From Eutreptiella sp. 'Long Island Sound 2002' (lineage: Eukaryota > Protista > Euglenida): a stretch of DNA of 64,000 nt. A model generated the notes under the pieces. That model did no database searches. It was not told the DNA's origin and worked only from the letters and a program-made list of their open reading frames with translations. The translations under genes were made by a program, and so were the position numbers. Numbering within the stretch: position 1 is the stretch's first letter; every line of letters starts with the position of its first letter. Below, in pieces: positions 2,291 through 52,479 of this stretch. The stretch covers positions 79,546,001-79,610,000 of the forward strand of contig OZ038378.1 of assembly GCA_964036045.1 (NCBI GenBank). Direction: 5' to 3'.

Positions 2291-4189
2291 CGTGGTGGAA
2301 TGGGGGGCTTGAACGAGACGATCATGGAGGTGGAGCCTCTGCTGTCCCTACCCATGGGATCAGTGCGAACCCTGGGGGACAACCGCGTAGGCTGGATACC
2401 CAACTGTGAGGACGGGGCCCCTCCTCGATGTGCGCCCGTGTGCAAACCGACGTGCTGCGCGTTCTGCGCGTTGTGCGCGTTCTAGTATTTCAATTCTGCA
2501 CGTGCCTCTGGAAGCGTGTGTTCGGCGTGCTACGCGTTCTGTGCGTGTTACTTGGTCTGTACGTGTTGTACGCGTTGTGCGCGCTCTACGCGTTTTCAAA
2601 ACCTTACGTGCAACACCGTTGGCTGCAAAAGCGCGCCTCCGGCCAAAGACATACAGATGGTAGACAAAGAAATATGTTGGCTGTTTTCCGGGGGCGCGCG
2701 AGCCACCCACCCAGCTAGGGGGGGCTGAAGGAGAGGGGGGCTCTCCAAAGCCTCCCAGCCAGCAAGCCGCGGCTAGGCGCAGCTCCATAAGAGAAACCTC
2801 AGTCTGATGTAAACATTGATGAAGTCGTGGACCGGCAACCAATGCTAAGGGTTCGAATTGCGTGTTGAGGCGTTTACCAGATTCCGGACCGGGGAACAAG
2901 TTGCCGTACGTTGCATCAAAGTGCCCCACGGAACCAACAGTGCCCAAATTGAGGATACTCCGTGTTACACCCCCCCTTGGTGACAGCCCATCGGAGGGCG
3001 TCGCACACCCCTAATCAGTCATTTTGCCATAAAGATGGCAAAGTTGGCTTGGCTTGTTGAATGACACTAGGGTTAATTTGTTGTTCCATAGGAAAAGCAC
3101 AGAACTTCCTAAGTTGCACGTCGCGTGCATAGGGTCCCGTAAACTTTGAATCTGTGAAGTTTCTGGTTAATTTTGTGTAGAAGCAGACGACGAAGATAAT
3201 GTGCTGCGAAACAGAGCGGCCTACTATAACATAAGCGTTGAAAGTTTAGTTCATCATGCGAGCACTCCTTCATCGCCGACGTAGAGGTACTTGACAATTC
3301 AGCATAAACAAGGATCCGTGTTGCTGGGGGTGTGATACCTAGGATGCCGACCATTGCCGTTCATGGCTTTTCGTGCTGTGCATGATGTCTTCTGTGTAGG
3401 GAAGGTAGTTGCAACTGTCTTCAGCTCGGGTAGTTTGGACGGTTAATTTTAAGGGCGCTTGGAATAGGTGTGACCGGATGCTCTTCGAGGGAAGCTTGGT
3501 CTGAAAGTAGTGCACACTGCGCGTGTTCTACAACGACGCGCCTTCCGTGTCTACCACGTAAGGAGCTATGGCCTCGACATTTCTTCTGTGCGCCGGCATC
3601 ATGTGATTCCTTTGAGGTTCAAGTCCATGGCCGCCTGCCGCAAGGTGGTGTCCCATATAGCATTGCTGTCCACAACACAAGCGGTTGCAGCATCCCCCAA
3701 CCGTTTGCATGACAAGTTTACATCGTGGACGACGGGCGTTGTTCAGAAGGACCAATACCCATCGGCCATGGCCTCCAATCTAACCCGTGGCCCAAAACCT
3801 ACCGCTACCTTCCTTACCCCCTCACTTTGTGCCGCCTTTAGTCCATTGTCCCCCATGCTCTACCCCCTACTACCCCTTTGATGAGTGCAACCATCTACGT
3901 GATTGGGCACTTCTGCGGCAGCATGTCCCAAAGGTGGTTCCACGTACACCACCGTGTGTTCCATGTACACCACAACACGTCCCACCCGCATTTGGGGTGT
4001 AACACAGTAAGGGGGTGCATAGTAACCCCCCCTTACTGAGTTTGACTTTGCCCCCCCTCCCAAACATGTGTCCCGGTTGTTTTTCTCCACCCTGGGTGGT
4101 CCAACACACTTCCCTATGTCCACTCTAGAGGTGTATAACTTCGTTTACCCGGAACTCCATGGTGTGTCGATTTCGCGAAACCCCCCCAA

Positions 4190-4359
4190 AACTCAGCAAC
4201 CCCCCTTACTGACACCCTTACTACCGCAGTAACCCAACTCAGTAAGGGGGGTTACTGACCCCCTTAGTGACTCAGTAACCCCCTTACTCACTCAGTAACC
4301 CCCCCTTATTGACCCCCCTTACTGAGTCAGTAACCCCCTTACTGACCCCCCTTACTGTG
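4190..4359. repeat. Type-A array (mainly C-rich orientation): CCCCTTACTGA(C/G)TCAGTAA
   Basis: Tandem degenerate copies of the pseudo-palindrome TTACTGASTCAGTAA separated by C runs; ends ccccttactgtg. Confidence 0.9.
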
Positions 4360-4412
4360 TTTTAACCGTAGCAACACTAGGGCACGAACAAATCAGGCAA
4401 GTATCAAATGTA

Positions 4413-6068
4413 TCACTCAGCCCTTCGTCGTTTGCGTGCCAACAAAGCCTCCCTTTGTCCTCCCTTGGCCTTGCGCAATTGTACACCCACCGCGAGTGCA
4501 TCCGTGTTGACCACATGGGCCATACCACGCCTCGTCACTCGCGGCTTCTTCAAGCACCAACCTCTCATGCTGTTTTTCAACCGGACTTTGAAGGTCCGGT
4601 TGCGGTACTCAATGGGGATGCTAGAGAACGGGTACAAAGACCTATACATCCCCAAAATTTTGCCACTGTGACACGCGGCCCAATGGGCCCACGGTGTGGG
4701 CTTCCACCCCAAGGCAGTCCAACACTCGCCAAACTGACGGGCATGTGCCTGAGCTTGGGCAACTTGAGTGGGGGTGAGGTACTCCTTTTCCCTCCACAGA
4801 CTATACATACCTGCGAAAGACCGCAACAATAGCTTAATGAGGACATGGGCACGCATTCCTCTCTCCCCGACCACCTCACACTCAAAGTGGCTACACAAGA
4901 TCACAACCAACTTGTGTGGTGTTTGGTGATTCTTCCATAACAAGGCACTGGAGGTCAGACTTAACTTTTCGTCCTTTGTTTGTTTCTGCTGCAAGCGTTC
5001 AGCAGGTGGGATTGCCTCTGCCTCAACTTGTACATGCTGATGGAGTTCCTGTAACTCCTTCACAGCACCACGCTTGCTGTGGTCGGTTGCTACCCAATCC
5101 TCAACCATCCAACCCACCCGTGTCACAATGGCATTTAAAACACGGCAGGCACAATGATTATAATCACCAATGCGCCGCCTTGGTGGGACGGAGGTAAGAA
5201 AAGAGCCCCAACGGCACAGGGCCTTGACAAAATCGGTGGGAACCATGCTTCCCACATTGCCACAACACCAACACTTGTCGCCAGGGTTACTGACTAACAT
5301 CAGCTTTTCATCCCCGGTGACAAACACCTCAAAAGTGTACCTTGTACCCCCCCACATTGTATCCCGATCCTGCTCAAGGTCTTCAACCTCCCTGTCTAGG
5401 CCGGCAAGCCGGTCGACGGCACGGAGGCATCGTCCATCGTCAGGACCATCAAGGGCCCACCATGTGGCCCACCTCCTTACATCGCTAGCTCGACTCGGGG
5501 TACCCCACACGTGGACGTAGACGTCGCAGCGCGTGGCCGATGTGCGCCACAGGGGTGTGGCATCTGGGGCTACAATGACCTTGATCTTAGTGTCCGTAGG
5601 GGGAGGCATTTGGCACTGTTGTGCCAATGCAACTTGTGTGCTCACCACATCCCATAGTGGGACAGCGGCAGCGGCTCTTTGGGACATGCCACTGCCAAAG
5701 ACAGCCATCGGGTGGGCCGTGTAGGGGCGCATGTGGCGGCGGGCTTTATCCAAGTCGGCCCGCTTGCAAGTGCGTGGCAGCTTGTATAACTGCCGCACAC
5801 TAGCTTGCATGTCGATCATCCGCTCAACAAGGGAAGCAGCCTTCTCCACGGGGGTATCAGAGTCGTCACCGCCGTCACTTGGGATGCCCAAGGTTATCCC
5901 CGTGCCCGCTATGGCAACGTTGGTGACGTTGGTGCCTAGCAGGGCGCTTGCCACGCGTGCAAGGCACTTCTTGCGTTGTGCCTTGGTCTTGGCGTCTTTG
6001 AGGGCTTCCAGTGGTGTAAGGGTGAGACGTTGTAGGTGCGCCTCAAACGTATCCACCGCCGCTTCCAT
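4413..6068 (-). CDS. Transib/RAG1/CMC-type DDE transposase, uninterrupted 551 aa (element A)
   Basis: IVAPDAT (D1), FVTGDEKL (D2; compare RAG1 TGYDEKL), CWCC, DYNHC (compare RAG1 DALHC), TPWAHWAACH (compare RAG1 TNYFHKTLAH), FSSIPIEYRN (E). Confidence 0.8.
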   Translation of the reverse strand: MEAAVDTFEAHLQRLTLTPLEALKDAKTKAQRKKCLARVASALLGTNVTNVAIAGTGITLGIPSDGGDDSDTPVEKAASLVERMIDMQASVRQLYKLPRTCKRADLDKARRHMRPYTAHPMAVFGSGMSQRAAAAVPLWDVVSTQVALAQQCQMPPPTDTKIKVIVAPDATPLWRTSATRCDVYVHVWGTPSRASDVRRWATWWALDGPDDGRCLRAVDRLAGLDREVEDLEQDRDTMWGGTRYTFEVFVTGDEKLMLVSNPGDKCWCCGNVGSMVPTDFVKALCRWGSFLTSVPPRRRIGDYNHCACRVLNAIVTRVGWMVEDWVATDHSKRGAVKELQELHQHVQVEAEAIPPAERLQQKQTKDEKLSLTSSALLWKNHQTPHKLVVILCSHFECEVVGERGMRAHVLIKLLLRSFAGMYSLWREKEYLTPTQVAQAQAHARQFGECWTALGWKPTPWAHWAACHSGKILGMYRSLYPFSSIPIEYRNRTFKVRLKNSMRGWCLKKPRVTRRGMAHVVNTDALAVGVQLRKAKGGQREALLARKRRRAE

Positions 6069-6129
6069 TATAAAAAGCTGTGCACAAGGAAAACGGCATC
6101 CTTGTTGCGTTGGTCTCTACTCATCAATT

Positions 6130-6402
6130 GGGGGCAGTAAGGGGGGTCAGTAAGGCGGTTACTGACTCAGTAAGGGGGTCAGTAAGGGGGGGGTTACTAA
6201 GTCAGTAAGGGGGTTACTGAGTCAGTAAGGGGGGGTCAGTAACCCCCTTACTGACTCAGTAACCCCCCCCCCTTACTGACTCAGTAAGGGCGTTACTGAC
6301 CCCCCCTTACTGACTCAGTAACCCCCTTACTGACTCAGTAACCCCCCCCTTACTGACCTCCTTACTGAGTCAGTAACCCCCTTACTGACCCCCCTTACTG
6401 AC
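6130..6402. repeat. Type-A array, G-half followed by C-half (internally inverted)
   Basis: CAGTAAGGGG copies to ~6240, then CCCCTTACTG copies; closely similar to 8213-8481. Confidence 0.9.
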
Positions 6403-6640
6403 CTAGAAAGTGGTGTACCGAGGCAGCTGTTTTCCTAGGGGTTGAATGTTGTTTCCCTCTTTTAGATGGTATGCCCATGCCATGGACAGTAGCAAAGCGT
6501 TGCACAACACAAAAGGACATTGTCTGCACCCTCAAGTCACAAGAGTTGGAAAGATTGTTGATATCGGTGGACCTCTCATGAAACACATCATCACTGCGCC
6601 AACCACATTGTCATTGCTCAGAAAAGGAATTGGCCGTGCC
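6395..6640 (-). pseudogene. Possible degenerate 2OG-oxygenase C-terminal fragment
   Basis: FATVHGMGIPSK resembles VHWGGGIPKA and VHRGSGIPKA in the A and B oxygenases. Confidence 0.25.
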
Positions 6641-6900
6641 TTCAGGCACCCGATCACGCACCCATTCATGAGCCCATTCACGCGCCCAATCACGCATCCA
6701 ATGACCCATCCCTTCATGAGCCCTTTCACGCACCCATTGACGCGCCCATTCACGTGTCTAATGACCCATCCGTTCGGGAGCCCATTCACGCACCCATTCA
6801 CGCGCCCATTCACGCACCCATTCAAGCGCCCATTCACGCGCCCATTCACGCGTCCAACCACCCATCCATTCATGCGCCCGGTCGCACGCCCAACGACGCG
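6640..6900. repeat. ~12-bp tandem repeat (CACGCGCCCATT-like)
   Basis: cacgcgcccattcacgcacccattca repeated; it produces the spurious THPF/NGRV ORFs. Confidence 0.9.
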
Positions 6901-6917
6901 TGCACCTGCATGCTTCA

Positions 6918-8118
6918 CTACTTCTTCCCTTGTCCGATCACCTGCAGCAATTCATTCTTGTGCCTTGCTACCACCTGTGCCTCTGTCTCTGCCTTTTCTC
7001 GTGCCGAGCGTTCTTCGGCGGTCTTCTGCCTTTTGGCTTGGACCGCCTCTTGGAGCGTGCGCACTTGCACTTCCAACTCCACGATCCTACCTTTCTGCTG
7101 AGCGGTCACTTGCCGCATTGCGGCCAAGTCCGCCTCTGCTTTGGACGCCTTACCCTTGGCGGCCTCCTTCACGATCCTCTCGAGGCGGTCCGGTAGTCCC
7201 ACAAGCGCGCTCATTGCGTCTTGTGTGTCCTCTGGGACTACCTCGCTGACCGACTCGGAGACAACACGCCCGACAACCGCACGGAGCTCCGACAACGTCA
7301 ACCCGTCCCCAACTTGAGGAGCCCCCCCCCCCCCCCGCCCTCGACGTTCCTCTGCTGCCCCTGCCTCTTCCTCTTGTCCTTCCCTTGGGACGGGGGGGAG
7401 GAGGACTGGGACGAGGTCTTCGACTGTCCAGCAGGGGAGGGGGGCTGCTCATCCTCGGGCGCCTCTCGCTTGATCCCCCTCCCCGAGGGCCCCATGAGGT
7501 GCTGCTCCTCAAGCCACGCTTGCTGCGCAGTTTCTGCAAGCCCCCTTGCCGGCCCGCCCACGCCACGCATTTGCCCAAGTCCGCGCAGCTTCATCCGCTT
7601 CCCATTTTCGTCGATGCAGATGTAATAGTGCGCGGTGTTGGCACGTGAGAAGCTCGTCCAAAGCCAAAATTGCGGCGCCGGCTGGCCCGCGGCCTCCACT
7701 CCATCCACGCCCACCGGCAGCTGCACCTTCACCGTTTGCATGGTCTTCTGCTCCTGCAACGATGGGCGGGAAGGGTAACTAAACGATTTCAACTGAAGAC
7801 CTCCGCCACGTACAAGGAACTAGCCCCTTTATTTCCTTTGGGGCATATCAACCTGCAAACTTAAATCCCGCGACATGTCGCACCTACACATACCTTGAAT
7901 TTCAGCTCAAATTCTTTGTGCCACGTGGTCTGCCCAACAGACCACACGGCAGACCCCGCATTGAGGACAACGGGGGTTGATCCCGTGGGCCACTGCACGG
8001 TATTCACCGAGGTCGGACCCACCACTGTTGCAGCCTGGAGTGTGGCCGGCTTTGCACTACCCGCCTTGGGTGCCACGTCCTCCAAGGGGAGATCTGCCGG
8101 GATCAACCGGGGCAGCAA
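6918..8118 (-). pseudogene. Element A gene 2: unknown N-terminal domain, low-complexity linker, C-terminal coiled coil (fragmented)
   Basis: ORFs 7861-8118, 7298-7792 and 6918-7301 are collinear; the last is heptad-rich (ELEVQVRTLQEAVQAK). Confidence 0.55.
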
Positions 8119-8212
8119 GTCAACGGTAGCCTACAACACATAGGGATGCAGGCAACCCCCTTCCACACCCCCTCAGAGCCCACTCCTACCCTAACCCAGT
8201 TACAACTCGTAA

Positions 8213-8481
8213 AACTCAGGAAGGGGGGTTAGTATGGGGGTTACTGACTCAGTAAGGGGGGTCAGTAAGGGGGGGTTACTGAGTCAGTAAGGGGGTTACT
8301 TAGTCAGTAAGGGGGGGTCAGTAACCCCCTTGCTAACTCAGTAACCCCCCCCCTTACTGACTCAGTAAGGGGGTTACTGACCCCCCCTTACTGACTCAGT
8401 AACCCCCTTCCTGAGTCAGTAACCCCCCCCCTTACTGAGTCAGTAACCCCCCTTACTGACTCATTAAGCCCCCCCTTACTG
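8213..8481. repeat. Type-A array, G-half followed by C-half
   Basis: Same architecture as 6130-6402. Confidence 0.9.
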
Positions 8482-8760
8482 TCATCTGGCATTTGTCTGT
8501 GCCTGTGGTCTGTGACTATCTGTGACTGTTTGTGACTGTCTGTGACTACCTGTGATTGTCTGTGACTGCCTGTGACTGGCCTGTGACTGGTCTGTGAGTG
8601 TCTGTGACTGTCTGTGACCGTCGGTGACTGGTCTGTGACTATGACTGTCTGTGACTGTGACTTGCCTGTGACTGTGAATGTCTGTGACTGTGACTTGCCT
8701 GTGACTGTCTCTAATTGTCTGTGACTGTCTGTGATCTTCTGTGACCACCAATTGTGATGA
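8482..8760. repeat. TGTGACTG/TCTGTGAC simple tandem repeat
   Basis: gtctgtgactg units abutting the type-A array. Confidence 0.9.
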
Positions 8761-8891
8761 AATTAAACACATAAATTAAGCCCAGATCATGTGGTGATGC
8801 ACAAGCACAGGCAGGGGAAGGGAGGAAACCTTTTAACCATCCAAATGAATAGCACGGAAATGCAATTGCAAGCAAGGTCTCGTTGATTCAT

Positions 8892-11080
8892 TCATTGCAA
8901 GTCATTTGAAACAAAAAAAAACAAATGCAAGGCACAGGGGCAAAACAGGCAGCAATGCATACAAAAAATAGCAAAGGCAAAAGAGGAAAGAAACGCATTC
9001 ACCTGATGACATTCACACATGTAGTCCCCCTTCTTGCCTTGGGGGTCGTCCCGCACGTGACCCGAGCCCGCCAGCACGGAGATGTCCATAATGGGCATGC
9101 GGGGGGGCAGCAGGTTCCACCACCAGGCCGTCACCTCGTCGTTGTCAGTTGTGGGCACTTGGAACCCTGCAAATGGACCCCCATTAACAACGAGGATGGT
9201 GCCCGCCTTGGTCTTCAAGACCATGCGGCAACCGCCAACACCCGGCTGCGGTAGCGGGGCGTCATCCTCGTGTTGCACCCGGAATGGCCAGTCACTCGGC
9301 GCAGGGGTGGTGTCCTCAGGGACAGGGCTAGCATCGAACGGCACAGTAGCATCATGTGCCGTCAGCAACTCGCCTCCACCCGGCATCAGGCATGTCAGCA
9401 TTGTGGGGAAGTGGCTTGGCAGCGCGTTGCTGGGCTGGGCTACTGGCGCCTCATTCGCGGGCTCCTCGCAAGCGGTGCACAACACACCCTTGTGTGTCCC
9501 ACACAACAACGCTTGCTTGCACCCGAAACACCGCGCACTCGACCCACCCACCTTCCGCCTGCACGACACCACACCACACACTTCCTTGCCCACCGCCTCC
9601 GCCTCACGCCGTACCCATGGGGGGGGGGACCACAGGGTCTGTGACATCGTAGTCAACCGGGACGGCTGACAGTCCGCAAAATGCAACCACGCGCGGGAGG
9701 GCATCCATGTCACCGGGCGCAGGGAGGTCCAAGGCCTTAGGAATACCCCCCCCCCCAATGGACCAACAAACTATGAATGATCCACAGGTCGTTGCGGCGC
9801 ATTCCCATCGGCACTTCATGCCACGGGTCGGGGGTGCATCTTGTGGACCCGTACACAAATGTGCTCTCGGTGCCATCAAGCACGTCCAAGTCCATGGTGA
9901 CGGGAGAGAATGCCGACCATGCGAATTGACCGCTTGGCAAAAAATCAGGCGGAAAATCGCGGTGCGGAAACTGCGGGTCATGTGTATTGGCGATGATATA
10001 GGCCACCGCCGTCACCATGTGGCGGAGCTGGGTGGCTTCATCGACCTGGTGCCGCACATGTGCAGCCCAGCGCAAGAGCGCGGGTAAGGGGTGCTCGACA
10101 CCCAGGAACTGGGTCCTCACCAAACCCGGCGGGGGGGGAGGCGGCACACCGTACACCACTTGCCGTGCGAGACCATCCTCAGGGCGCGCATACGTGGGCA
10201 TGGTGCTATTAAAAATGTTCTTGCGCAGCTTGTGGTCCAAACCACCAAACTCACTGCGGAGGTCTGCCGTAAACGAGGCAACCCCACCTTGAGCAAACCA
10301 ATGCTCGAACTCGAGCAAATTTTCCTTGACCTGGTTAACCATTGGGGCAGGGGGCAGAACAATGGCGGTGCGAGGCTCAGCGCTACCTAGCAAACATGGG
10401 CCGCTCTGGAGTGGTAGAGCTAAAATAGTCCCGGTGGTGTATTTCGTTGGTGTTGTTGCACCAGGAAGGTCTTCGAGCCAAGCTTGTGGCTGGCGGCTGT
10501 GAACAGAGTAAACCGGCACCCGCTCCTCACAATCTGTTGAGCGAACATAGCGAAGTTGCTGCACGCATTGTTGGGGGCACCATTGTCCCTCTTGAAAATC
10601 GCGAGGTTTCGGCTTCTGGACACTAAATTGAACTGCACCATACAACGGTGCAACCCAAAGTTTTTGGGTTTTGTTCACTGTTGTGGTGATTTCCTTATCG
10701 AGCACTTTGGTAAGGTGGTCATACTCTGCGAAAGGGAGGCGGATCTGGAAACACGGCACGTGGGGGTGGCGAGCTGCAATGTCGAGGATAAAATCGGAAA
10801 GCACACACGGTGCCCTCTTGTCGAAGAGGGGGAAAGTCACCTTGACGGAACCAAAATCCGTATCCGCGGGAAACTCAACGAACTCACTCGCATGCTTAAC
10901 AACCGCACCATGCTCGACAAACCCATCCCCCCCCCCGTACCCGCGTGTCCCAACTAGGTTATTGACATGGTTGACCCACGTTAGGACGGGCGGGAAGGCA
11001 GCCAGCAGCCCAGCACAAGCCATGGCACTCCGGGGCCACAAAAAGTCTAAAAGGTGAACAAAAGTGTGCAGGAAGGACAC
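8892..11080 (-). pseudogene. Element A 2OG-Fe(II) dioxygenase (PhyH-like) with C-terminal Cys/His zinc-finger-like domain; two frameshifts, both in homopolymer runs
   Basis: QFPHRDF (HxD), LLVHWGGG (distal H), LPRVVAF (R), then CGVVSC...CFGC...CGTH...CTAC. Frame changes fall in the C/G runs at ~9745-9756 and ~9619-9628. Confidence 0.75.
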
Positions 11081-11088
11081 AACGCAAA

Positions 11089-11288
11089 ACTCAGTAAGGG
11101 GGGTCAGTAAGGGGGTTACTGAGTCAGTAAGGGGGGGGTTATCGAGACAGTAAGGGGGGGTTACTGAGTCAGTAAGGGGGTTACGGAGTCAGTAAGGGGG
11201 GTTTAGTAAGGGGGGTTACTGCTCAGCAAGGGGGTTACTGACCCAAGGTCAGTAACCCTTACTGACCCAAACGGGGGGGGTTACTGAC
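11089..11288. repeat. Type-A array, mainly G-half (subterminal)
   Basis: CAGTAAGGGGGGTTACTGAGT copies; inverted relative to 4190-4359. Confidence 0.9.
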
Positions 11289-11469
11289 TTTTTTCAACTT
11301 TGTCTACCGAGGGCATACGGACGGAGAGACACATGTCCTTCCCTATTTTGGACATGGAGAACAGAAATATGCGCCTAGGTCCTAGCAATATGGGCAGATG
11401 TGGTAATGGCAGAGGTGTCCATTTTTGGGGGGTTACTATGCACCCCCTTACTGTGTTACACCCCATTGT

Positions 11470-12023: not shown

Positions 12024-12087
12024 GAGGAATGAGAGGGCCTAGGCAGGAAATGAGGGAGGGTTTGGAAGCAAGGGCCTAAAAAAACAC

Positions 12088-12285: not shown

Positions 12286-12293
12286 AGCATTGG

Positions 12294-12836: not shown

Positions 12837-12884
12837 TTGGGCCCCATATCGCTCCTCCCACGAAAAATGCCCTTAGGCAACCCC

Positions 12885-18733: not shown

Positions 18734-18734
18734 T

Positions 18735-40024: not shown

Positions 40025-43000
40025 GTGGTTGTATCCATGGCCTGTGGGAGTCCGGGACAGTGCGATAGTGCGAGCCTTGCCGTTGCCGCCGTTAACGTTG
40101 GATCCCCTCCTCCTTGGTTTTGTTGTACATACAATACAATCTTCCCTTTCCTCACAATACCTGATATGCGTGCATCTTTCCCCTTGCCTCCCATCAACGT
40201 TGCCGCAAGATGGCGCAACGGCGACATCCCGACAAAGAAGTGGCGGTGCCCCTGTGGCAAGGTCTTGCCCATAGTGCAGAACCCAGACAACAGGGCATTT
40301 AGCATCCACTGCTTGGGTACCCAGCATACCAACTGGGTGCGGTACGGCAAAGTTGTGCCGGAGTTCTTTCACGGTAGCATCAGCTCCGATACTCCCCTAC
40401 CGAGCATGATGATCCGTGTAGACAAGCATCCGCAGCTCCTAGGGGCTGTCCGGCTTGCATCTACATTGGCCGCATCTAGTGCAGCCGCTGTAGCAGAACT
40501 GGGCCCCATTCTTCAGATGCCAAACCTGGATGTAGATGATGCAATGGAGATGGACCCTTACCCTGACGCTGCGATTCCTCTCCGCGAGCGCAAATGTCCC
40601 GGCGTTCCCCCTAGGCAGGCTTGCACCCTGCAGCAGCTGCGGTGGATGTACCCCGTGCATGCACGGCAACTACGAGAAGCCACGTGGGGAGTTCTGCGAC
40701 CGCCGAGGGCTATACGCCCTGGATGGCCGCACAGATGGTCGTTGGACGACATGGAGGGCCGCTATGGTCCCTGTCTACCGTGCCTGGATTTGCTACCCGG
40801 GAAGTATGCGGCTAGGCTGAACAACTGGATGAACACCGCCATTGACCCAAAGGACACAGAGCCCCATTAACGGCAAGGGCCCCACGCCTTGTCCCGTCGC
40901 CTCAACGACGCTAAAGACAGGGGGTGCGTTGCCCAGGAGGCCCTGGGCCAGTTGCAGGAGGACTTGCACAAGTTCCGGCAGCTTTGCGCGACCTACAAGG
41001 CGCTCGCTGTTGCCATTGCGGAAGACGACCGTCCGCTTGCCGGGCGTCGTGGAGCATGGCTTTTGCAGGTCGGGTGGCCTCCAGCCAAAGTGTTGGGGCG
41101 CCTCTGCGATGCCCGGAGCGTGCAATCCTGGGATGCCTAGGACAGGGATACTCCGGCGGTAGCAGCACTGGGCGTTGGGGGGCCCAAGCTGTTGCAGGCA
41201 CTGAACAACGCTGGGTACCTGCCTAGCTACGACACGGGCCGAAGGCACGTCTAGGGAGCCCCCCGTGTTCGTCGGAACGAACCGCCACGTCTGCCCTCGC
41301 TGCTGGAGGCCCTAGGCCACATCCCGGGTTGCCATGTGTGGCACCTGTGCATCCATGAAATCCATTTCGAGGACGTCATCACTCTCCCTTGCGAGCCACT
41401 GGCAGTCGGATTGTGCGCCATGTGTTGGCCGCACCCCATGCCGCTGGCTAGTGGCGCCGATGTGGAGGCTCTGGCACAGGAGCTGGAGCAGGATCCAAAT
41501 ACATACCACGCCGCCAACCAGGCGACAGTGGTGTTTCTGGCTCCTCATACAGAGGAGGGGTACTCTGCCATCCGTGTGTGGGTCATCTCCACCTGCGGCA
41601 GGTCCAAGGCAGAGCATTGCTATTCTTTTCGGAAATACATGGCCGAGTTGTGCGGCAACGCAGCATTTTGGGACCTCAACGGTTTTCTCCCGTCCGCTGA
41701 TACGGACGGTGACGCACGGCGGTCCCGTGAGATGCAAGCGTCACTGTATGCCGAGGGTGGTAGCACCCTCCCCTGGATGCCTGAGATTCCACACATTCCA
41801 TTCCATACCGATGAGTTCGGAATGTGTGGGAACTTCGACCCCACCCATTTGATGAAACGGGTGTCCCGCATGTTGGGGGGTACCTCCCATGTTTTGTAGG
41901 GAGAGTTGTCTTATGGTGTGCTGCAGGAGCTGCATAACCATTGTAACGACCTTAAGGCTGTCTTACCCCCCCTGCCACAGGACAAACAAGAGGTTGAGCC
42001 CGCGTTTGACCTCCCGAAATCCATGGCTGCTATACGCCGCGCAGCCGTGCACAACCTTAACCTGCCGCCCCCTCTAGTCCATGCTGCCGGCGATGCCCTT
42101 TGTTTGGGTACGGCACTTGAAAAATTCATAGGGGGGGTTTATAACACAGAGCTGGCGCCAACGGTAGCACTGGAAAACATCGCTGAAGCTGGATACATCA
42201 TTTATCTCATCCAGCTTCGGTATCAACCATTCCGGGATAGCTGGTATTTGCATTTCGTTCGCACAGTCCAGGCGTTCCCGGTGATTGCCCCCCTTTTTGC
42301 AGTCGCTGGCGAAAAAGGGGTGTGGGGCACAAAAATTTTTGCTTGTCTGTGTGGCAACCAGAGGGCAGAGGACCGCTTCTGCCTTGTGAGGACAATGGTG
42401 ATCAACCGCAACTACTCGGTGGCTGAGCTTGCAGTACGGTTGTCGGCTGCACTGATTGTAGGCACAATTTACAGCCGCCACCCGACCTGGCAGCAGCAGC
42501 GGTCTCGCCATTCCTCATTGACTGCGCGCGGCCGCGCCACTACACGGCGGACATGGACATTAGCCGGGTGGACCCGCCCTCGGTGTGCCACAGGGCTACC
42601 GACATGGCTTTGGATGTTGTCCGTATGTGGTGGTCCGATGAGCGTACCCTGACCCTAAGGAGCACAACTTTTGCGAACCGTTCGGGGAGGGCCTTCTGCA
42701 TGTTGACCTTGATCATGTATGGGTGGCCCCAGGGGACAGTGGGGGTGGTGAAACAGAGTACGATGTGGATACACTCGCTGAGCTACTTTGGGAGGCTCAA
42801 GGGGGGCGAATTGTGTATCAGGGGCGCAACATGCATGTCATGAGTGCAGTAAATCTGCGCATCAACAGGAACCATGTCCGGCGGTTGGCTGACCGCCTTG
42901 CCAGTACTGCCGGCATTCCGGCTATAAGGGGGGGGCCGGAGCCCACAATGGGCAGGGCTCAGTTCCGGAAGGGCTGCCCGTTTGTGGCAATTTTGAACCT

Positions 43001-43193
43001 GCCAGGGCAACCACCACAAAGTGCGCCATTTTTGCTCACCTTTTCCTCTGCACTCATTGGGGGGCGGAGTGTCCCTCACCCCTCCCATCAGGAGCTCGCA
43101 ATGGGCGCGGCGTTTGTGATAGGGATGCCGCAGAGATTTGTTTGTAGGGAGGGGGATGGGATGCTCGTATGGGAAGGGGCGGGGGGAAACTGA
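40025..43193 (+). pseudogene. P-element/THAP9-like transposase, fragmented
   Basis: DTDGDARR, FDPTHLMKR (D-x2-H), QDKQEVEPAFDL, GNQRAEDRFCLVRT (E); in-frame TAG at 41897-41899 and frameshifts. Confidence 0.7.
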
Positions 43194-43699
43194 TGCAGGT
43201 GGAATATAAGGCCTGTGAGTGGGTGAACACTTACCTTGAAAAGGGGGTTCGGGCCTTGCAAGCGGGGTTCCTGGATAGCCGTGCGTAGCAGCTAACCCCC
43301 AAAACACAAGCCGCTCCCTTGCTGCCCAGGCAAGTTGCTGCCTGCGAGGGGGTTACGCTGCTGCCTGCAATGATTCGTAGGCGGGATGGGGAGGTTTGTG
43401 TCCCGCGTGCCTGGTTGTGGGAAGACAGTATCGCTGTGGAGGATACGGATTCACATTGCGTTCCACCTGCCCTCAGAAACACTCCACCCCCCTTGCTATG
43501 GATGTTGCGGGGAAACCGGCTGTGTCCTGCGTATGCGTCGCGTAAAGGGGGAGCCACATGCGCATCCGGTTTCTTGCGCAAATGGGTTTTTTTGTAAGTT
43601 CAGCATGCGGGTAGCCCGCAAGCAGGGTGTGGAGGTACCGCCTGTTGAGTGCCCCGTCTAGCGGTGCGGCTGGCAATGGCGGCACAACATGCGCCGCCA

Positions 43700-45610
43700 C
43701 TGTGAGCAGCAACACCCAGACCACCAGCTGCCTGAGGAGCGAGCCGTGCCATGGGACCGGGGCCCGGACGAGCTGATGTAGTTCATGGATGCATCACGCC
43801 ATTTTGCACACCCCAAGGGGCGCCGCAGCCACTGCAAAAGGAATCGGGACCAGTCGAGACGGGCACTGGCAGAACTGTGAGGGACAAGTTGGACGTTTTG
43901 GGGGTTCCGCGCCTTCCTTTTGGCTTGCAATGCATCCAATTGGTAGAGTGAAAACCCCTGCACTGCTGACTGGTGGCATTTGACATGTTGTGATCTGCTA
44001 ATGGGTACTTTAGGTTGAACGGAGGGCATGATTTGTACCCCAGGGGGTGCCGCAGCCATTGCAAAAGGAATTGGGACTATTGGGGACGGGCATTCGGAGA
44101 TCAGTGAGGGACCAGTTGGACGCTTTGGGATTTTTTCCCCCCTTTTTTGCCGTGCAATGCATCCAAGTGCTAGGGTGCAAAGGAGCATTGGAGGCACACA
44201 ACATTTGAAGTAGTGGCAATCAAAGGACTGTTTTGGAAGGAGCCTTTTTTCTTCTCCACTCCCTTTTGTAGTACCCCTACAGGTTGCTTATACAACGCCT
44301 GGGAAAGAAAAGAAGAGGCGGAGGACCCCAAAGATCACCCCATACCGGGGCAAGGAAGAGCATAAGAAGAAGGAGAACATGAAGAAGAAGAGAAGAAGAG
44401 AAGAAGAGAAGCAGAAGGAAGAGAAGAGGGAGAAGAAGGTGCAGAAGATTATCCCCTTTGAGGGGAAGGCGAGGAAGAAAGAAGAGAAAGAGGAAAAGGA
44501 GGAGAAGAAGGTGCAGAGGCTCATCCCCTTTGAAGGGAAGGCAAGGAAGGAAGAGGAGAAGGAAGAAAAGCCCATCCCCTTTGAAAGTATGGCAAAGAAG
44601 GAAGAGCAGAAGGAAGAAAACCTCTTCCCCTTTGAAGGGAAAGCAAGGAAGGAGGAGGAGAAGGAAGAAAAGCAGCGGAAGAAGGTGCAGAGGATCATCC
44701 CTTTTGAAGGAAAGGCAAAGAAGGAGGACAAGAAGGAGATTGCCACTTTGTTTGGCGAGCAAATGTTGGGCAGCATGCGTAGCGACTAGGTTGGGGTCGC
44801 CCCGGCAGCCGCAGCCCCGCCCCGCCTGTCGGCCTACCAACGGGCCGACCGGGGGAGCATTCGTCCCTTCCCCGGGTGAGTGAGCTCCACGTTCCACGGT
44901 GCCACAACGGTGTTTTTCAACACCACTAGGCCTTCCACCATGACATGAGATGGACAAAGCATTACTGCGGATGGTGGCACACACAGAGACTACTGCGGAT
45001 GATGGTGGATAGATAGCGAAAAGATTGTGAAAAGCCTCGCGCTGCTGACTGGTGACATTTGAAACGTTGTTGTCCGCTAATGGGAAGTCCGCTTTGAAGT
45101 GAGGCCATTCTGTGTACCCCATGGGGCACCGCAGCCACTGCAAAAGGAATTGAGACCGGTGGGGACGGGCACTCGGAGAACCGTGAGGAACAAGCTTGAC
45201 GCTTTGAGGGTTCATTGCCTTTTTTTGCTTGTAATGCATCCAGCTGGGAGGGTGAAAACGTCTGCACTGCTGACTGGCGAGATTTGAAACGTTGTGATCT
45301 GCTAATGGGGAGTCCGGGTTGAAGTGAGGGCATTTTCTGTTAACCAGGGGGCGCCGCAGCCACTGCAAAAAGAATTGGGACCATTGGGGATGGGCACAAA
45401 GAGAACTGTGAGGAACAAGTCTGACGCTTTGGCGGTTCATTGCCTTTTTCTGCTTGCAGCGCATCCAGCCGGTTGGGTGAAAACGTCTGCACTAGTGACT
45501 GGTGACATTTGAAATGCTGTGATCTCCTAATGGGGAGTCCGGGTTGAAGTGAGGGCATTATGTGTAAACTAGGGGGCGCCGCAGCCACTGCGAAAAGAAT
45601 TCAGACCGTT
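43700..45610. repeat. ~225-bp tandem repeat interrupted by a purine-rich block
   Basis: gcagccactgcaaaaggaattgggacc recurs near 43825, 44050, 45130, 45355 and 45580. Confidence 0.85.
44330..44790 (+). repeat. AG-rich tandem repeat (IPFEGKARKEEEKEEK-like units)
   Basis: cccctttgaagggaaggc recurs about five times. Confidence 0.85.
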
Positions 45611-45687
45611 GGGGACACGCACTCGGAGATCTGTTTGCCTGGCTTGTTTGCCTCCTTATGTGAAGACACATGTGTTGCTGACAAGCG

Positions 45688-47405
45688 TTGAGGGGATGGC
45701 CCCCACGACCTCCACCGAAAGAGGCACCCAAGAAACCAGAAGCTCAAGCAGCAGAGACGTCAAAAGAGGCAGCAGATGCACCAAGACAAGCAGCAGAGGC
45801 AGCCCTAGTGCCAAAGGAGGGAAAGCCACAAGCGGCAAAGGAGTCAGAAACGCAGCCGCAGTCAGCGACACAGCCGGCAGAGGCAGCAACGCCGACAGAA
45901 GCAAAGCCGCAAGGGCCATAGGTGACAGCAAACCAGCCAGCAGCGGCAAACAGCGCCGAAAATAGCAAAGCCGCAAGCGTTGAAGGAGGCAGCAAAGCAG
46001 CCAGCAGCGGCAGCAACGCCAAAGGAAGCAAAGCCGCAAGCGCCGAAGGAGGCAGCAAAGCAGCCAGCAGCGGCTGCAGCGCCAAAGGAAGCAAACCCGC
46101 GAGCGCCAAAGGAGGCAGCAAAGCAGCCAGCAGCGGCTGCAGCGCCAAAGGAAACAAAGCCGCAAGCGCCGAAGGAGGCAACAAAGCAGCCAGCCGCGAC
46201 AGCAGCGCCAAAAGAAGCAAAGCCGCAAGCGCCGAAGGAGGCAGCATAGCAGCCATCAAAGCAGTCAGTAGGGGCACCACCAACAAAGAAAGCACAGCCG
46301 CAAGCGCCCCAAAAGGCACCGGGAACGACGGAGGCAAAGCCGCAAGCGCAACCGGAGGTAAAAAAGAAGGCAGGACGGCAGCCTACGGAGGAGTGTCTGC
46401 AAGCCGGGGTTTCCATACCTAGCTGGGGAGCAGAGTCGGATGATTCCTCCTCAAGCGGGCACTCCGCCACCTTCTTTACCGCGGAGATCGGCGAGCTGAC
46501 GGACATAGTACTGGCAGCCTACAGGGCCGGGGGCCCACCACCACCGAATCCTAGCGAGTGGGATGTCCCACGGAAAGTTCGATTGCCCCAGTTGGACGGA
46601 GTTGGCAAGACAGAGAGTGGCGGAGGACGCACCGCACAGAATACCGCACCGCCGCAGCGAATGCAGCCGGGTTGGTGGACGAGGACCGGAAGCCCGTCCA
46701 TTTTACGGTGACGACGAAAATTGACATGGTGGCGAAGGCGACCGCACCGGCCTCATATTATTACATCGAAGGAACCATGAGGTCAGCCTGGGAGCTCAGC
46801 GAGTTTCTCCGGGTAGAGGAATGGCTGAGCGGACATCAGAATGCACCAGAGGCAAAGGCAGAGGCAGCAGCGGAGAAGGGACATGCAGCAGACCAGCCAC
46901 AACCATAGAAGGGACATGCCCCGGATCAGCCATCAGGAGAGAAGGCAACGTAGGCGGAGAAGGGACATGCTGCGGACCAGCCACAAGTACAACCCGAGAA
47001 GGGGGAAAAGGCAACACAAGGATCCGGAAGATCGGAACAAAGGCTGTGGAGCACGCCAGGACCCCCACCAGGGGCGCGGACGGTGGAACCCGCCATGAAG
47101 AAGGCGCCCCGCTCATCTGCGGGCCACCCAGTCGTGGCTGGTGACTCGGACTCGGACAATTCGGAGGAGTGGTCGGAGGAGTCGGTGGAGTCGGACACAA
47201 TTGCCAGCAAAGTACGAGACCACAAACCAAACCGGAACAAGACGCCGTACAAAGACAAAAAGACAGAGAGGAGGCGCAGAGAAAGATGGAAGCAAGAAAG
47301 GCGGAGGACAAGAAGGTCTTCGATGGCCTGAAGCGGCGGTACAAGAGGCAAGCCGCGGAACTCCAACGAATGTTCGAGTTACGGAAGAACTTGAGCGGCA
47401 CCTAA
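45688..47405 (+). pseudogene. P-element cargo: Pro/Ala/Lys/Glu repeats, MBD-like domain and coiled coil (fragmented)
   Basis: 63-bp unit KEAAKQPAAAATPKEAKPQAP; EWRRTHR...SYYYIEGTMRSAWELSEFL; EEAQRKMEARKAEDKK. Confidence 0.4.
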
Positions 47406-47899
47406 GATTTGGGCAATTTCCATTTGTGTCCCTTTTGTTGGAATTTTTGCCCTTCTTCCGTTCGTCCAAGCATGCCTTCTGTCGCCTATACTGGGTGGGT
47501 CGGAGTGTGCCGGTCGGACCCCAATTCTCGGCGACCCTCAACATGCAACCACGGGGGTAGCCCAGAGTGGCGCTAGAGAAGGTCGGGCATCGGTGCCCGA
47601 AGATGCTAGTTGGGCTAAGGCCACAATATATTGAGTGCAGCACACGGTGCACTACCCCCCAATCGACTTCTCGGGGTCTCCACTTTAGCCGTGCCCCCTT
47701 GCGACAAATCTTGCATCGCATCAGCAACATGGCGCCGATGTGAGTGACATGCAGTGGATGACAGAACAGGAGCAAGTGGTGAGGCTGTCCACAAGGTGGG
47801 TTGAGAATGCGACCAATGTGCGCGCCCCATCGCTCGCGGAGAGGAATCGGCAGCTGCACAGCTCCAACGCCGCCCTGGCCGAGTTCCGGAAAGGCGGCG

Positions 47900-48400
47900 G
47901 ACGCTGTGGAGGCCCCAAGGGGCCATGAGGCGCGCAGGCTGGTAGCCTGCAGGGCGCACCGGGCACCTGCCCAATCATCCGGTGGCATACCACAGCCCCC
48001 AGGATGATGGGGTCCTCCACCCCTGCCGGCCCAGCCGCCACTCGTTTGTGGTGGCTGTGGACCGGGAGGGCGACTAGACGTGGATTGTGCATCCGCTGCA
48101 CCTGCAGCCAGCGCACGACTTGGCAATGAGCTTCCAGCGAGCCGGATTCACGGTGCATGCCGTGCAAGAGCCCCGGCTGGAGAGGGTGGCCCAGAATCAG
48201 AACTGCTCCTACCTGGCGGTCAAAGCCGCCAGCGCGTTCATGTACAAGCCCACGGACAAGTGGAGGATCACCGAACCCAGCGACCTCTTGGACAAGGACA
48301 AGTCCATGATGGACAGCACCGGGAAGAGCGGCGTTCAACACTGGAATGGCTGCAGGGATGGAGCCAGATCAAGGTGCGGGCATAGTCCAAGAGACGGGGC
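47900..48400 (+). pseudogene. Possible Ulp1-like (C48) peptidase remnant
   Basis: RHSFVVAVD...VAQNQNCSYLAV loosely resembles the HW...Q-N-x-x-C motif order. Confidence 0.3.
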
Positions 48401-49879
48401 AATTGCGTCCCCAAGCGGCCCCAGATCGTCAGCACCGCGGAGACAACCCTGCAAGAAGGATTGCGCGCGCGCGGGTACGGAATGCAGAGCAAGGAGGTGA
48501 TGATGGCGGCTGTGGCGAGGCGCAGTGGATGGGCCCTCGACGTGATGAGGAGCGTGGCGGCCGGCTCCGAACCGGTGCTCATGCTCGGCGCCCCGGACAT
48601 GGAGTTGAGGTACTGTAGTACCTCGCGGGCGCAGGAGTTGCTGGGCTTGGCGCACCGAAGTCGGTAGTGGAGCAGGAGCAAGACCCGGAAGGAGGAGACG
48701 GTGGCGAAGATGCGGTGGCTGGTGCTGATGGTCACGGAAACGGAGAGTGACGCGGTCGTCGGCATGCGGGCGCGTGGGCGACCAAGGAGGCAAGAGACCA
48801 AGCAGGCAAGCAAGAGAAAGGAGGAAGAAGCGGAGCAAGAAGAAGAGGAGGAGGAAGAGGAGGAGGAGCCTACGCACAAAAGAAAAAAGTGTTGAAGCGG
48901 ACCCAGATGGTGGATAGGGACAGTGGCCAGCGTACCACGGCACTGGTGACTGCCCTGTGGCGTGCGGCGTGCATCCGGCAATGGTTCGTGCAGCCCGCCA
49001 TTGTCTAGTGCCGGGGGGGCAGACCGTGCAAAGCCCCGCCCCGTCATCGTCCTCCACTGCGCGGCCACTCCGGTGGAGGTGGCAGGCCCGCCGGTGTGTG
49101 GTGGTGGGACCACAGCCAATGTTGGGGAAGGGACGTGCGCCATTGGGTGGTTCCAGTGTTGTGGCAGCGGGACCAAGAGGGGAAGGACACGGGTGCAGAT
49201 GAGAACCGTAGGGGGCATGGGAGCCAGAGAAGCAAAAGAAGCGGCAATGCAAGGGCGATGCAAGCACGATGCAAGGGCGCCACACCGGCGATGCGCGGAG
49301 GACCCCGTTGGCCTTACCCTGGCAGCCACACGGATGAGGAGCTGACCTGAGGTGGAAAGGGAGGAGGGAGCAGGAGAACAATGTGCCTGTGCAGTATGAC
49401 CAACTACTGCGCAGGACAGGGCTGGCTCACTAGGACAAGGTACAGACAGGGAGGCAAACAGGCCAAGTGACCGTGACCGTGACCCACAACAGGGAGGAAA
49501 GGAGGCGAGATGGGTGGCGCCGAGAAGGGGGAGCAACAGAGAACGGGGATGATAATGGGACGAGACGGAGGAGGGCAAGAGGGGAGCGAGGGGGCAGGCC
49601 CCCCGCCAACAACAGAGGGTGGAGAAGATGGTGGACAGAGGGACTAGAGGGAAGGGGGCAGAGGGAATGGCGGCGGGCTGGGGGGTTGGGAACCCGGTTC
49701 CGTGAGTCTGCTCCGCGATCAGGGGCATGTGATTGGCCACGCGTGGCCATGGTAGCCGGGGCAGCCTTCACAGGAATTCACTGCAGTTCCTGTGGAGCTG
49801 GCGGAGCACGGGAGAGGGTTGGGGTGCTTGTCGTGCATATCGTCCATGTTCGCTCCAGAAGCTGTCCACACGTATCAAG

Positions 49880-50700
49880 ATTGTGCAAACGATCTCTGAA
49901 TGGCGTTGAAGACAGGCAAAAAACAGGTGTGTCGTGGTTGCGAATTCTCTGCAGGTTGCAAGGATGATGCGCGAAGGAGTACCCAAGTTGACCTGCCGGT
50001 GGGCAAGGCAACAAGAAGGCTAGTGCATATGTGAATGGCGATGAAGACAGGCAAAAAAAAGGTGTGTTGTGAATGTCATTTCGCTGCAGGTTCCAAGGAT
50101 GATGCGTAAAGGAGTGCCCAAGCTGATCTTCCGTTGGGCAAGGTAATAAGAAGGCCAGTGCATATTTTAATGGCGCTGAAGACAAGCATTCCAAAAAACA
50201 GGTATGTTGGCGCCCCGGCACACGTGCCACTTTTGTGCAGGTATCAAGAACTTGTGCAGCAACAAGAAGACCTTAACCCTCAAGTTCAGCATGGCCGCAT
50301 CATGGGCAGCGCATCTCTGCATGGCGCCGAAGAAAGGCAAAAAACAGATGTGTTTTGCTTGCCACTTTTTTGCGGGTATCAAGGTGTTGTGGAGCAACAC
50401 TACCACCCTGAGCCGCAAGTGGACAATGGCCGCATCATGGGCACTGCATCTCTGCATAGCACTGAAGACAGGCAAAAAGCAGGTGTGTTTTGCTTGCCAC
50501 TTTTCTGCAGGTATCAAGGTTTTGTGGAGCAACACCAAGACCGTGACCTTCAAGTTGACAACGGCCGCATCATGGGCAGCGCATCTCTGGATGGCGCTGA
50601 AGACACACACGAAACAGGTGTCTTGTGCGTGCCACTTTTCTGCAGGGCCCTCGGTATTCTGCACCTTTGAATCACCGTGAAAGGCTCAAGTCCAACACCT
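49880..50700. repeat. ~135-150-bp tandem repeat
   Basis: gaagacaggcaaaaa...gtgt...tgccacttt...tgcagg recurs about six times. Confidence 0.85.
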
Positions 50701-51344
50701 GTGCCAACCACCAAGGCTGCTGCAACCACCAGACGGCATTTTCGCATGGCGCCGAAGGCAGACATTCAACAAAAAGAGGTGTGTTGGCGCCCAAACACAG
50801 TGTGTGCAAGATGCAAGTCACAAGGGGTGTGCGTGCGAGTACCGAGTGCGACGCAGTGCCGAAGGGTGCAATTCCCTTCTACGCCTTTGCACATTGAGCC
50901 GGGGCCGTAGTCTCTTCTCTTTGAGAGAGCGATGGTGTCAAAAGATCAATGTCCTCCTGTACATATACATGTGAACAATCCATCTGACGGTTGGTGCTGT
51001 TGTGCTTGGAACCCGGCGCTCCGTCAGTCGGCCCTAGGATCGGGGGCATGTGATTGGCCATGCCTGGCCATGGTAGCCGGGGCAGCCTCCACAAAAATTC
51101 TGTGGAGGCGGCGGAGCAAGGGCGGTGGGGTGGGGTTTGGGGGGGCCGGGGGGTGGGGGGCAACAGGGGGGGGGGCTCCGGAGGGGGGGGGGGGTTCCTG
51201 GACCCAGTGGGGACAATGGGCGGTTAGGGTAGAAAAAGTCCCCCACAGGTAGAAGTTTTTGTGTACGGGGTTGGGGGGGGACGTGTTGCGGTTGAAAAGA
51301 AAGTTTGCGCCTCTTGGGGGAATTTTTCTTCCGCCCTCCCCCTG

Positions 51345-51687
51345 GGTGAATGAGTTGAGGTCTCACCTGAAGGGGATGGGGGCACTGCACAGGGCGTTGG
51401 GACTTAGTATTAGTTTGTGGCCCCACTTGTGGGTAGACCACATGGTTGAGGTGGCAGGGCTGTATGGGGATTGGAGCCTGACAGGGGGGTTCAAAGCAGA
51501 GGGGAGACACAAGCGGCTGAAGCAGGAGGTCAGCAAAAGGTCTTTCAAGGGGGGAGGGAAGGGGAGCAGGCTGAGGGGGGTGGGCAAGAGTTGGGGTGAA
51601 CTCATCCGAAATGATAATATGGACTACAATTTGTTAAATAAGGGGTTAATTGTGTGGGACCCGGCATGGACAAAACAGGATGCATAA
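51345..51687 (+). pseudogene. Element E transposase, 3' part
   Basis: VNELRSH...SLWPHLWVDH (H-x4-H)...FKAEGRHKRLK (E). Confidence 0.75.
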
Positions 51688-52479
51688 GAAGAATGAAGTG
51701 CTTGGAAGCACTTGAAGGGTGTACAAAAGTCAGAACACTCATTGTTGTTGTGCTCATGCCATGTACCTCAGCGTGCATTATCATTTTAATGTGTCCATGT
51801 ACCCAACGAAGGGCTATGGTTTCATTTAACCATGATTTAGCTTAAGACAAAACTAGTTTTAGCACACGTCAAAGCCAGATTTAGCTTGCAATGCAGGGTT
51901 GCAAACCTAAGACAAAAGTTGGTATGGTAAGCGCGCATCAAAAGTAGTTTTAGCGCGCGTCAAAATAAGGTCAAATCACGGAAAGCCCCCGTTTTGACTA
52001 TGGGGTCAATGAAGTAGCACCGGACACGAAACACCCCGTCGTGGGGTGATGGCGGCGGTGTTTTGGTTGATTCAAAAGCGGGGAGCCTTGTTTTTCCTTG
52101 AAAAAACTTTGTTGAAAAAGGGTACAAGTGGGAGGAGGGCAGTAAGTGGGGATGTGAGTTTTTGCCTTGATTTGCAGGAGTTTACCGCGTTTAAGCGAAC
52201 TTCATTGTCTTCGTAGTTACATCCGAGTTCATGAACGGGGGAGGGGTTGAGTACACGGCCGCTACCGGCCTCAATTTTTTTGTGTGGCGGGGTGCATGCC
52301 TGTGCCATGGTGGGAGTTGGACCAAACTTTCTATTGGGCTCCACGACCATGGCAAGCGGGCCCCCACACCCGCTTATTTGCAGCTCACTGGAATGGTTGT
52401 TTCGAGGGGCAAGGACATGGCCGCTTTGGTCACAATACTTGCGAACAATATTCAGGAAAGCGGCCATTTTGTGGTGAAA

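Follow-up and report, generated by a model that had tools for sequence, protein, structure and literature searches.

The DNA considered here is a 64-kb window of the genome of the euglenid Eutreptiella sp. 'Long Island Sound 2002' (contig OZ038378.1, positions 79,546,001 to 79,610,000, counted below from 1), a repeat-rich stretch with a GC content of about 57% that contains nested copies of one group of DNA transposons. Short motif arrays of four kinds mark four transposon families, called A, B, C and E. The original prediction, made from this sequence, held that A, B and C each carry an oxygenase gene, a coiled-coil gene and a transposase gene in the same order and orientation between inverted ends. 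Element A displays this organization in a single complete copy, whose features are as follows.

3993-11465, minus strand: element A, complete 7.47-kb copy with inverted ends of ~38 nt starting TGGGGTG and a TT/TT target duplication
4413-6068, minus strand: transposase, an intact open reading frame (ORF) of 551 amino acids (aa) with a RAG1-like predicted fold
6921-7819, minus strand: third gene, with a ~100-aa N-terminal domain, a low-complexity linker and a C-terminal coiled coil
8892-11080, minus strand: oxygenase, with an N-terminal domain, a PhyH-type core (HRD...H), a Cys-rich zinc-finger-like region and a C-terminal domain
4230-4375, no strand assigned: subterminal motif array; the other arrays lie at 6132-6403, 8216-8481 and 11086-11290

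Read along the minus strand, the order in A is array, oxygenase, array, third gene, array, transposase, array. A colinear copy, 96.8% identical and with the same ends, an AA duplication and all three genes inside, lies at an independent locus (L003), which shows that the three genes sit inside the ends of a mobile unit, as had been anticipated for further genomic copies. Shortened or rearranged A copies occur at two other loci (L001, L004), and two contigs (L002, L005) contain the transposase and no cargo. The third gene has one frame break in the window copy, at a C run (7321-7335), and is uninterrupted in L003 (273 aa). As one additional C stands at 7321 in the short-read contigs from one run (X2), a homopolymer error of the long reads may have caused the break. 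A G run (9741-9751) breaks the oxygenase into two ORFs of 447 and 288 aa. Its length is 11 in the window, 10 in L003 (11324-11333) and 13 in some short-read contigs, and transcriptional slippage, frameshifting or assembly error are possible explanations. The non-coding 5' region of A (11081-11465) is 83% identical to that of a sister family (9065-9460 in L009), which exceeds the conservation at synonymous sites of the adjacent gene (dS ~1) and points to functional cis-elements in this part of the sequence.

Elements B and C are split by nesting and by an inversion, and their parts are distributed as follows.

12079-16788, minus strand: 5' part of element B, inverted, with its end at 16788
16482-16615, 14121-14304 and 12079-12261, minus strand: B arrays of CGCGATAAC
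~16328-14327, minus strand: B oxygenase, frameshifted, HRD...H retained
~14132-12294, minus strand: B third gene
20759-22624, plus strand: 3' part of B, with the transposase (20759-22241, one frameshift), an array near 22320-22390 and the end at 22624
22625-30031, minus strand: 5' part of element C, with its end at 30031 and arrays at 29672-29845, 27249-27343 and 24907-25068
28676-27786, minus strand: C oxygenase, HTD...H
27190-25922, minus strand: C third gene
23734-22660, minus strand: C transposase, N-terminal part
16789-17775, plus strand: 3' part of C, with the C-terminal part of the transposase (16990-17265, Hx4H and E), an array (17411-17560) and the end at 17775
~12050-20650, no strand assigned: inverted segment of ~8.5 kb, its approximate limits inferred from the orientation of the parts

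The inverted segment contains the B oxygenase and third gene, the 3' part of C and the 5' part of a further element, E2. One breakpoint falls in B, between the last internal array and the transposase, and the other to the left of the E2 5' flank, so that the 3' part of C is cut off from the remainder of C by both the B insertion and the inversion. The B ends (16788, in reverse orientation, and 22624) both terminate in ...GCATCCCA, have TT/TT flanks in B orientation and adjoin the two C transposase halves. The C ends (17775, 30031) begin TGT(A/G)C(C/A)TGCGGCTCA and adjoin both halves of E2; taking the uninterrupted copy E (37560-37570) as the empty site, the C duplication is CC. When the inversion was undone in silico, and B and one duplication copy were removed, the C transposase halves rejoined into a single family-profile match that spans the junction (profile positions 217-488, E 8e-19), which supports a nesting model with one inversion. 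C would have inserted into E2, B then into the C transposase, and the inversion would have followed, with A most likely a separate and recent insertion.

With the inversion undone, A, B and C all read array, oxygenase, array, third gene, array, transposase, array, and the predicted gene order stands. The prediction of inverted ends holds as well: every one of the four families starts with TG and finishes with CA, and the 2-bp target duplications agree on both sides in A (TT) and its L003 copy (AA) as well as in B (TT) and C (CC). Each family has its private short motif, palindromic in most, whose half-sites reappear in the terminal inverted repeat. The A motif is the palindrome TTACTGA(G/C)TCAGTAA, all 22 copies of which lie within the four arrays; the motifs of B (CGCGATAAC), C (GCGCTCA(G/C)TGAGCGC) and E (TTTAGCGCACGTCAAAA) occur in the window 19, 14 and 16 times, respectively. 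In every family the arrays are restricted to sites beside element ends and between genes.

Placement of the transposase

A family profile recovers transposase remnants in A (4419-5891, minus), B (20759-22217, plus), C (23620-22660, minus, and 16990-17265, plus) and E (38618-38842 and 51346-51633, both plus), which bears out the claim that the four elements have the same transposase type. The motifs D169, D253, C266xxC269, H462x4H467 and E487 are kept in 24 to 29 of 29 sequences, and D302xxH305 is also conserved among these homologues; C and E retain Hx4H and the Glu, in the variant form HxWxDH. Public data contain 513 homologues (E up to 0.001), most of them belonging to this genome or to short contigs of environmental origin, with tens of near-identical protein copies per family.

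None of the 29 members matched a Pfam family at E up to 10, RAG1 and Transposase_21 included, and a profile search of PDB sequences gave no match to RAG1 or to any other protein, so that the relationship with RAG1 is visible only by structure comparison. The AlphaFold model (29 sequences) has a mean predicted local distance difference test score (pLDDT) of 87 and a predicted template modelling score (pTM) of 0.82. Full-length Foldseek comparison with the PDB retrieved the mouse RAG1 core (E 4e-12, template modelling score (TM) 0.56), the amphioxus RAG1-like protein BbRAGL (E 1.5e-9) and Helicoverpa HzTransib (E 1.4e-7). The second His of Hx4H precedes the Glu by 20 residues, and the same spacing is present in RAG1. 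Among the folds of the Atlas and the AlphaFold database, however, RAG1, Transposase_21 (EnSpm), Plavaka and DUF1280 clusters are about equally close (TM 0.6-0.7), so fold searches do not separate Transib from CMC; among the nearest language-model neighbours, RAG1 clusters are the sole large named family. The family thus belongs to the RAG1/Transib/CMC radiation, its transposase having an RNase H core of RAG1/Transib type together with two zinc-binding motifs. The Transib/RAG1-like fold that had been proposed is recovered, whereas Transib in the strict sense is not established, and membership of the CMCT clade (EnSpm, Mirage and Chapaev, with Transib, Plavaka, ESTA and Lanisha) fits equally, given the 2-bp duplications, the TG...CA ends, the subterminal arrays and the missing Pfam RAG1 match.

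The CMCT clade was defined by Kojima (2025), who also described TET/JBP dioxygenases on fungal ESTA, EnSpm and Plavaka transposons (PMC12730594). Among these, ESTA has a transposase that is RAG1-like by HHpred and makes TA duplications (PMC12730594). The catalytic and zinc motifs of the clade are present in the Eutreptiella family, and the 2-bp duplication lies inside the clade's range of 2 to 5 bp (PMC12730594).

The oxygenase, the third gene and their linkage

A homologue of the A oxygenase on an environmental contig (L006) is one continuous ORF that spans both A ORFs, including the Cys-rich zinc-finger-like stretch, and we therefore treat the 447-aa and 288-aa ORFs as one gene. The L006 protein matches Pfam PhyH (PF05721) with 27.9 bits, above the threshold of 22 and over profile positions 2-204 of 213. 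Most of its nearest named clusters in the Atlas (93 of 100) are PhyH, and its best match among PDB sequences is 4nao, a putative oxygenase, aligned via the WHRD and HRG motifs. The A protein is similar to it (E 6e-17), and by this homology A probably has a PhyH-type enzyme. An Atlas search with the A oxygenase itself returned GAF domains at 0.66 and was uninformative, and an alignment-based homologue search with the oxygenase returned nothing. Of the three families proposed for comparison, it is thus PhyH to which the oxygenase is linked, via L006; TET/JBP and AlkB profiles gave no match to the oxygenases, the only Pfam matches being PhyH, 2OG-FeII_Oxy_3 and 2OG-FeII_Oxy_5. The HxD...H triad takes the form HRD...H in L006 and in elements A and B, whereas C has HTD...H.

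The oxygenase is under strong purifying selection while travelling in transposons. The comparison was made with the sister family of A:

9065-11701 of L009: deletion derivative of the A sister family, with the 5' end and oxygenase kept and the third gene and transposase lost

Between A and this derivative, the ratio of nonsynonymous to synonymous substitutions (dN/dS) is 0.13 for the oxygenase (430 codons, dS ~1) and 0.22 for its C-terminal ORF, which argues that the gene is not passive cargo. This 2-oxoglutarate/Fe(II) (2OG/Fe(II)) dioxygenase, probably PhyH-type, measures ~700 aa and ends in a Cys-rich tail; it has belonged to these elements for a long time and is kept by selection.

The architecture recurs outside A, B and C. 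In another family of this genome (L007), whose transposase is 35% identical to that of A and which has its own palindrome (TTCCTGCACAGGAA), the order is array, oxygenase, array, third gene, array, transposase; it was read between arrays, the ends being unmapped, and only A, B and C showed the fourth array, past the transposase. The L006 contig (572-2762; transposase 38% identical) reads array, transposase, array, oxygenase, with arrays of the palindrome TTACTGCGCAGTAA on both sides of the transposase, and its gene order is thus reversed with respect to this genome. The expected three-gene synteny is found again in the L007 family, whereas in L006 the linkage of transposase and oxygenase is conserved and the gene order is not. 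Altogether, the linkage spans families whose transposases are 25-45% identical.

In position and layout the third genes agree among A, B, C and L007, with only marginal similarity in sequence, and none of them matched Pfam. The proposed coiled-coil gene of A, B and C therefore stands as to its place and layout and less so as to its sequence.

Elements E and E2 and the remainder of the window

The E-type elements are less complete, and one of them may be composite.

17776-19117, minus strand: 5' part of element E2, inverted, with the end at 19117, an array (18733-18842) and the start of the oxygenase-like gene
30032-31225, plus strand: continuation of E2, with the oxygenase-like gene (30032-30630) and an E-type array (31052-31225)
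36236-52221, plus strand: element E as defined in the original prediction, with the 5' end at 36236, arrays at 36493-36601 and 51835-51968, and the 3' end at 52221
~36663-38351, plus strand: E oxygenase-like gene, triad lost (HGM...R)
38618-39733 and 51346-51633, plus strand: pieces of the E transposase

E-type ends, TGTAAC(C/T)ACGAAG, occur at 36236, 52221 and 19117, and the flanking pairs of E are unmatched. E2 shares the termini and the oxygenase of E, and we likewise found no transposase for it, nor a 3' end in the search near 31.4 kb. Foreign insertions of ~11.5 kb (39.8-51.25 kb) interrupt the E transposase, and no third gene was found in E. The end at 52221 (52205-52221) is identical to the 5' end of E2 (19101-19117) at 17 of 17 bases, both being TC-flanked, whereas the 5' end of E (36236-36252) has two base differences from it and a TA flank. 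The 52221 end being closer to the E2 5' end than to its own supposed partner, the chances are about even that the sequence called E is a chimera of the 5' part of one copy and the 3' part of E2; its genes and E-type ends were correctly recognized, and its unity is in question.

Several other features were noted in the window. Within the region that interrupts the E transposase (39800-51250), ORFs at 40025-40870 and 41906-42652 do not match Pfam, and tandem repeats occur with units of 225 nt at 43.8-45.7 kb, of 63 nt at 45.8-46.3 kb and of 135 nt at 49.9-50.7 kb. The segment 31250-35950, flanked by E-type arrays (31052-31225, 35950-36097), is probably a further insertion: it measures ~4.7 kb, reaches a GC content of 70% and has long ORFs on both strands without Pfam match. 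A piggyBac-type transposase in two ORFs lies at 552-2194 (Pfam DDE_Tnp_1_7, E 3.8e-11), followed by an acidic GAG/GAC repeat (2075-2313). Outside the transposons described here, tandem repeats lie at 53406-53900, 54348-54520 and 56315-57291; they comprise C-rich ones with a 15-nt unit (CACCCCACAGCCCCA type) and an array whose unit is 47 nt.

Interpretation and comparison with known systems

We interpret these elements as a separate lineage of cut-and-paste DNA transposons of the CMCT clade that combine a transposase of RAG1/Transib fold with a linked dioxygenase, a reading to which we assign a probability of about 0.8. The transposase (~550 aa) would cut at the TG...CA ends and join them to the target with a 2-bp staggered cut. 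The arrays are putative binding sites for an element protein, which could be the transposase, through its N-terminal domain, or else the third protein, by parallel with En/Spm, where TNPA binds subterminal motifs. The oxygenase would counter host silencing or else regulate the transposition complex. As the counterpart of the TET/JBP enzymes on fungal transposons, which are thought to undo methylation-based silencing, it could hydroxylate chromatin, nucleic acid or a host factor and so aid the element's escape from silencing by the host; on this analogy we hold the proposal tentatively, at somewhat less than even odds. A more elaborate version, in which oxygenase, third protein and arrays form a self-recognition and anti-silencing module, with a sequence-specific element protein recruiting the PhyH-type enzyme to the element's own arrays to hydroxylate a DNA base or chromatin mark, is speculative and in our view doubtful. 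Euglenozoans do have base J, a modified base made by a dioxygenase. If the module existed, it would represent a nucleic-acid or chromatin chemistry new for the PhyH family.

A number of observations count against the interpretation as CMCT transposons with a working dioxygenase, or at least against parts of it. We know of no role of the PhyH family on nucleic acid, DNA or chromatin. The oxygenases of the window are below the Pfam thresholds (A without match, C with E 5e-4 to 2OG-FeII_Oxy_3), and the AlphaFold model of the A oxygenase (pLDDT 44, from 13 sequences, many of them fragments) is too poor for comparison. A single A oxygenase ORF would require 9 or 12 G in the G run, and no copy seen is in frame. 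The DSBH (double-stranded beta-helix) oxygenase predicted for all of A, B, C, E and E2 is present as homologous genes in the five elements, but those of E and E2 read H-x-M...R and have lost the iron ligands. Copies within family A have dN/dS of 0.7-1.9, a neutral drift that is expected of copies after insertion and is uninformative for selection. RNA evidence consists of a few contigs with transposase and oxygenase, at low depth, in two estuary metatranscriptomes, where DNA carry-over is possible. Finally, the ends are TG...CA, whereas those of CMCT elements are mostly 5'-CA...TG-3' (PMC12730594).

The closest competing placement, that the elements are Transib in the strict sense and sister to RAG1, draws on RAG1, BbRAGL and HzTransib as the top matches among solved structures and on RAG1 clusters as the only large named family among language-model neighbours. 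There is however no solved structure of a CMC transposase, so the PDB cannot discriminate, and predicted Transposase_21 and Plavaka clusters are about equal in fold (TM 0.6-0.7). Pfam RAG1 is not matched, and the traits of strict Transib are absent: duplications are of 2 bp versus 5 bp, and the ends TGGGGTG, TGGGATG or TGTAAC stand against a CAC-type heptamer resembling the recombination signal sequence. Subterminal arrays and several genes per element are also unlike canonical Transib. Transib relatives nonetheless differ in end sequence and in duplication length, with 3-bp or TA duplications among them (10.64898/2026.08.26.747230), so that 2-bp duplications and TG...CA ends leave kinship with Transib possible; we regard the strict placement as rather unlikely. 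EnSpm/CACTA affinities are mixed, with subterminal arrays in common and no CACTA ends, 3-bp duplication or Transposase_21 match.

As to the cargo, host-gene capture is frequent in DNA transposons, and the oxygenase and third gene could be host passengers (Pack-type capture) of no use to the element; the iron-binding residues gone in E and E2 and the interrupted A oxygenase ORF would suit such an origin. We consider it very unlikely, because the linkage holds across divergent transposase families and an environmental relative, the dN/dS between sister families is low, and the same arrays flank every gene. That the region is instead an immobile duplicated host gene cluster or an assembly artefact is hardly credible. 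Homopolymer lengths do differ in the long-read assembly and the inversion is known from one assembly only, but exact ends with 2-bp duplications occur at unrelated loci, C has an empty site, copies number in the tens, and the elements are present in independent sequencing runs. A more serious alternative, if still short of probable, concerns the function of the enzyme, which could be a protein hydroxylase or small-molecule enzyme that regulates the transposition complex or a host protein, and not a modifier of DNA, RNA or chromatin. The substrates known for PhyH enzymes are small molecules and side chains of proteins, and no search showed similarity to TET/JBP or AlkB; the Cys-rich zinc-finger-like tail, on the other hand, would suit contacts with nucleic acid or chromatin no less than contacts with protein.

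The elements of Eutreptiella appear as a deep-branching addition to the RAG1/Transib/CMC radiation with 2-bp duplications and TG...CA ends, which bears on the variability of end and target recognition near the V(D)J recombinase ancestor. They are laid out with unusual regularity, motif arrays specific to each family flanking each of the three genes, and as testable material they offer an unbroken transposase of 551 aa, elements that are nearly intact, ends that are defined, and candidates for binding sites. In Pfam and the searchable literature we did not find the family, nor any paper tying PhyH enzymes to DNA transposons or describing the family in euglenids. To our knowledge, transposons with their own 2OG/Fe(II) dioxygenase come only from fungi and always have TET/JBP enzymes. 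The lineage may be called undescribed, as was first proposed, but its strategy has a precedent in fungal CMCT transposons with TET/JBP (PMC12730594). What is new here is the enzyme, probably PhyH-type, and the euglenid host: a dioxygenase-carrying strategy is seen far from the fungi among eukaryotes, and with another enzyme family.

Compared with known systems, the closest likeness is to fungal ESTA, EnSpm and Plavaka, which also have a DDE transposase with C(2)C and H(3-4)H motifs and several genes including a 2OG/Fe(II) dioxygenase (PMC12730594); ESTA in addition shares the 2-bp duplications and the RAG1-like transposase. Unlike in these fungal elements, the dioxygenase is probably PhyH-type and not TET/JBP, the duplications are TT, AA or CC and not TA, the ends are TG...CA and not CA...TG, and arrays also lie between the genes, one of which is a coiled-coil third gene. 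KDZ transposons of mushrooms (Kyakuja, Dileera, Zisupton) are likewise DNA transposons linked to a 2OG/Fe(II) dioxygenase, with another transposase lineage and another dioxygenase family; for those with TET/JBP, a role in escape from methylation-based silencing was proposed (PMC12730594). With Transib, RAG1 and ProtoRAG the family shares the predicted fold over the whole catalytic core (E 4e-12) and the motif order D, D, CxxC, Hx4H, E, but it differs from Transib and RAG1 in Pfam match, duplication length and the lack of a CAC heptamer. Canonical Transib elements consist of a single gene; the extra gene of ProtoRAG is RAG2-like, and ProtoRAG is not known to carry an oxygenase. CMC elements make duplications of 2-4 bp (10.64898/2026.08.26.747230), and En/Spm (CACTA) and Mirage resemble the present elements in their short duplications, subterminal motif arrays and more than one element-encoded protein, whereas CACTA ends and a Transposase_21 match are absent here and intergenic arrays and an oxygenase are present.

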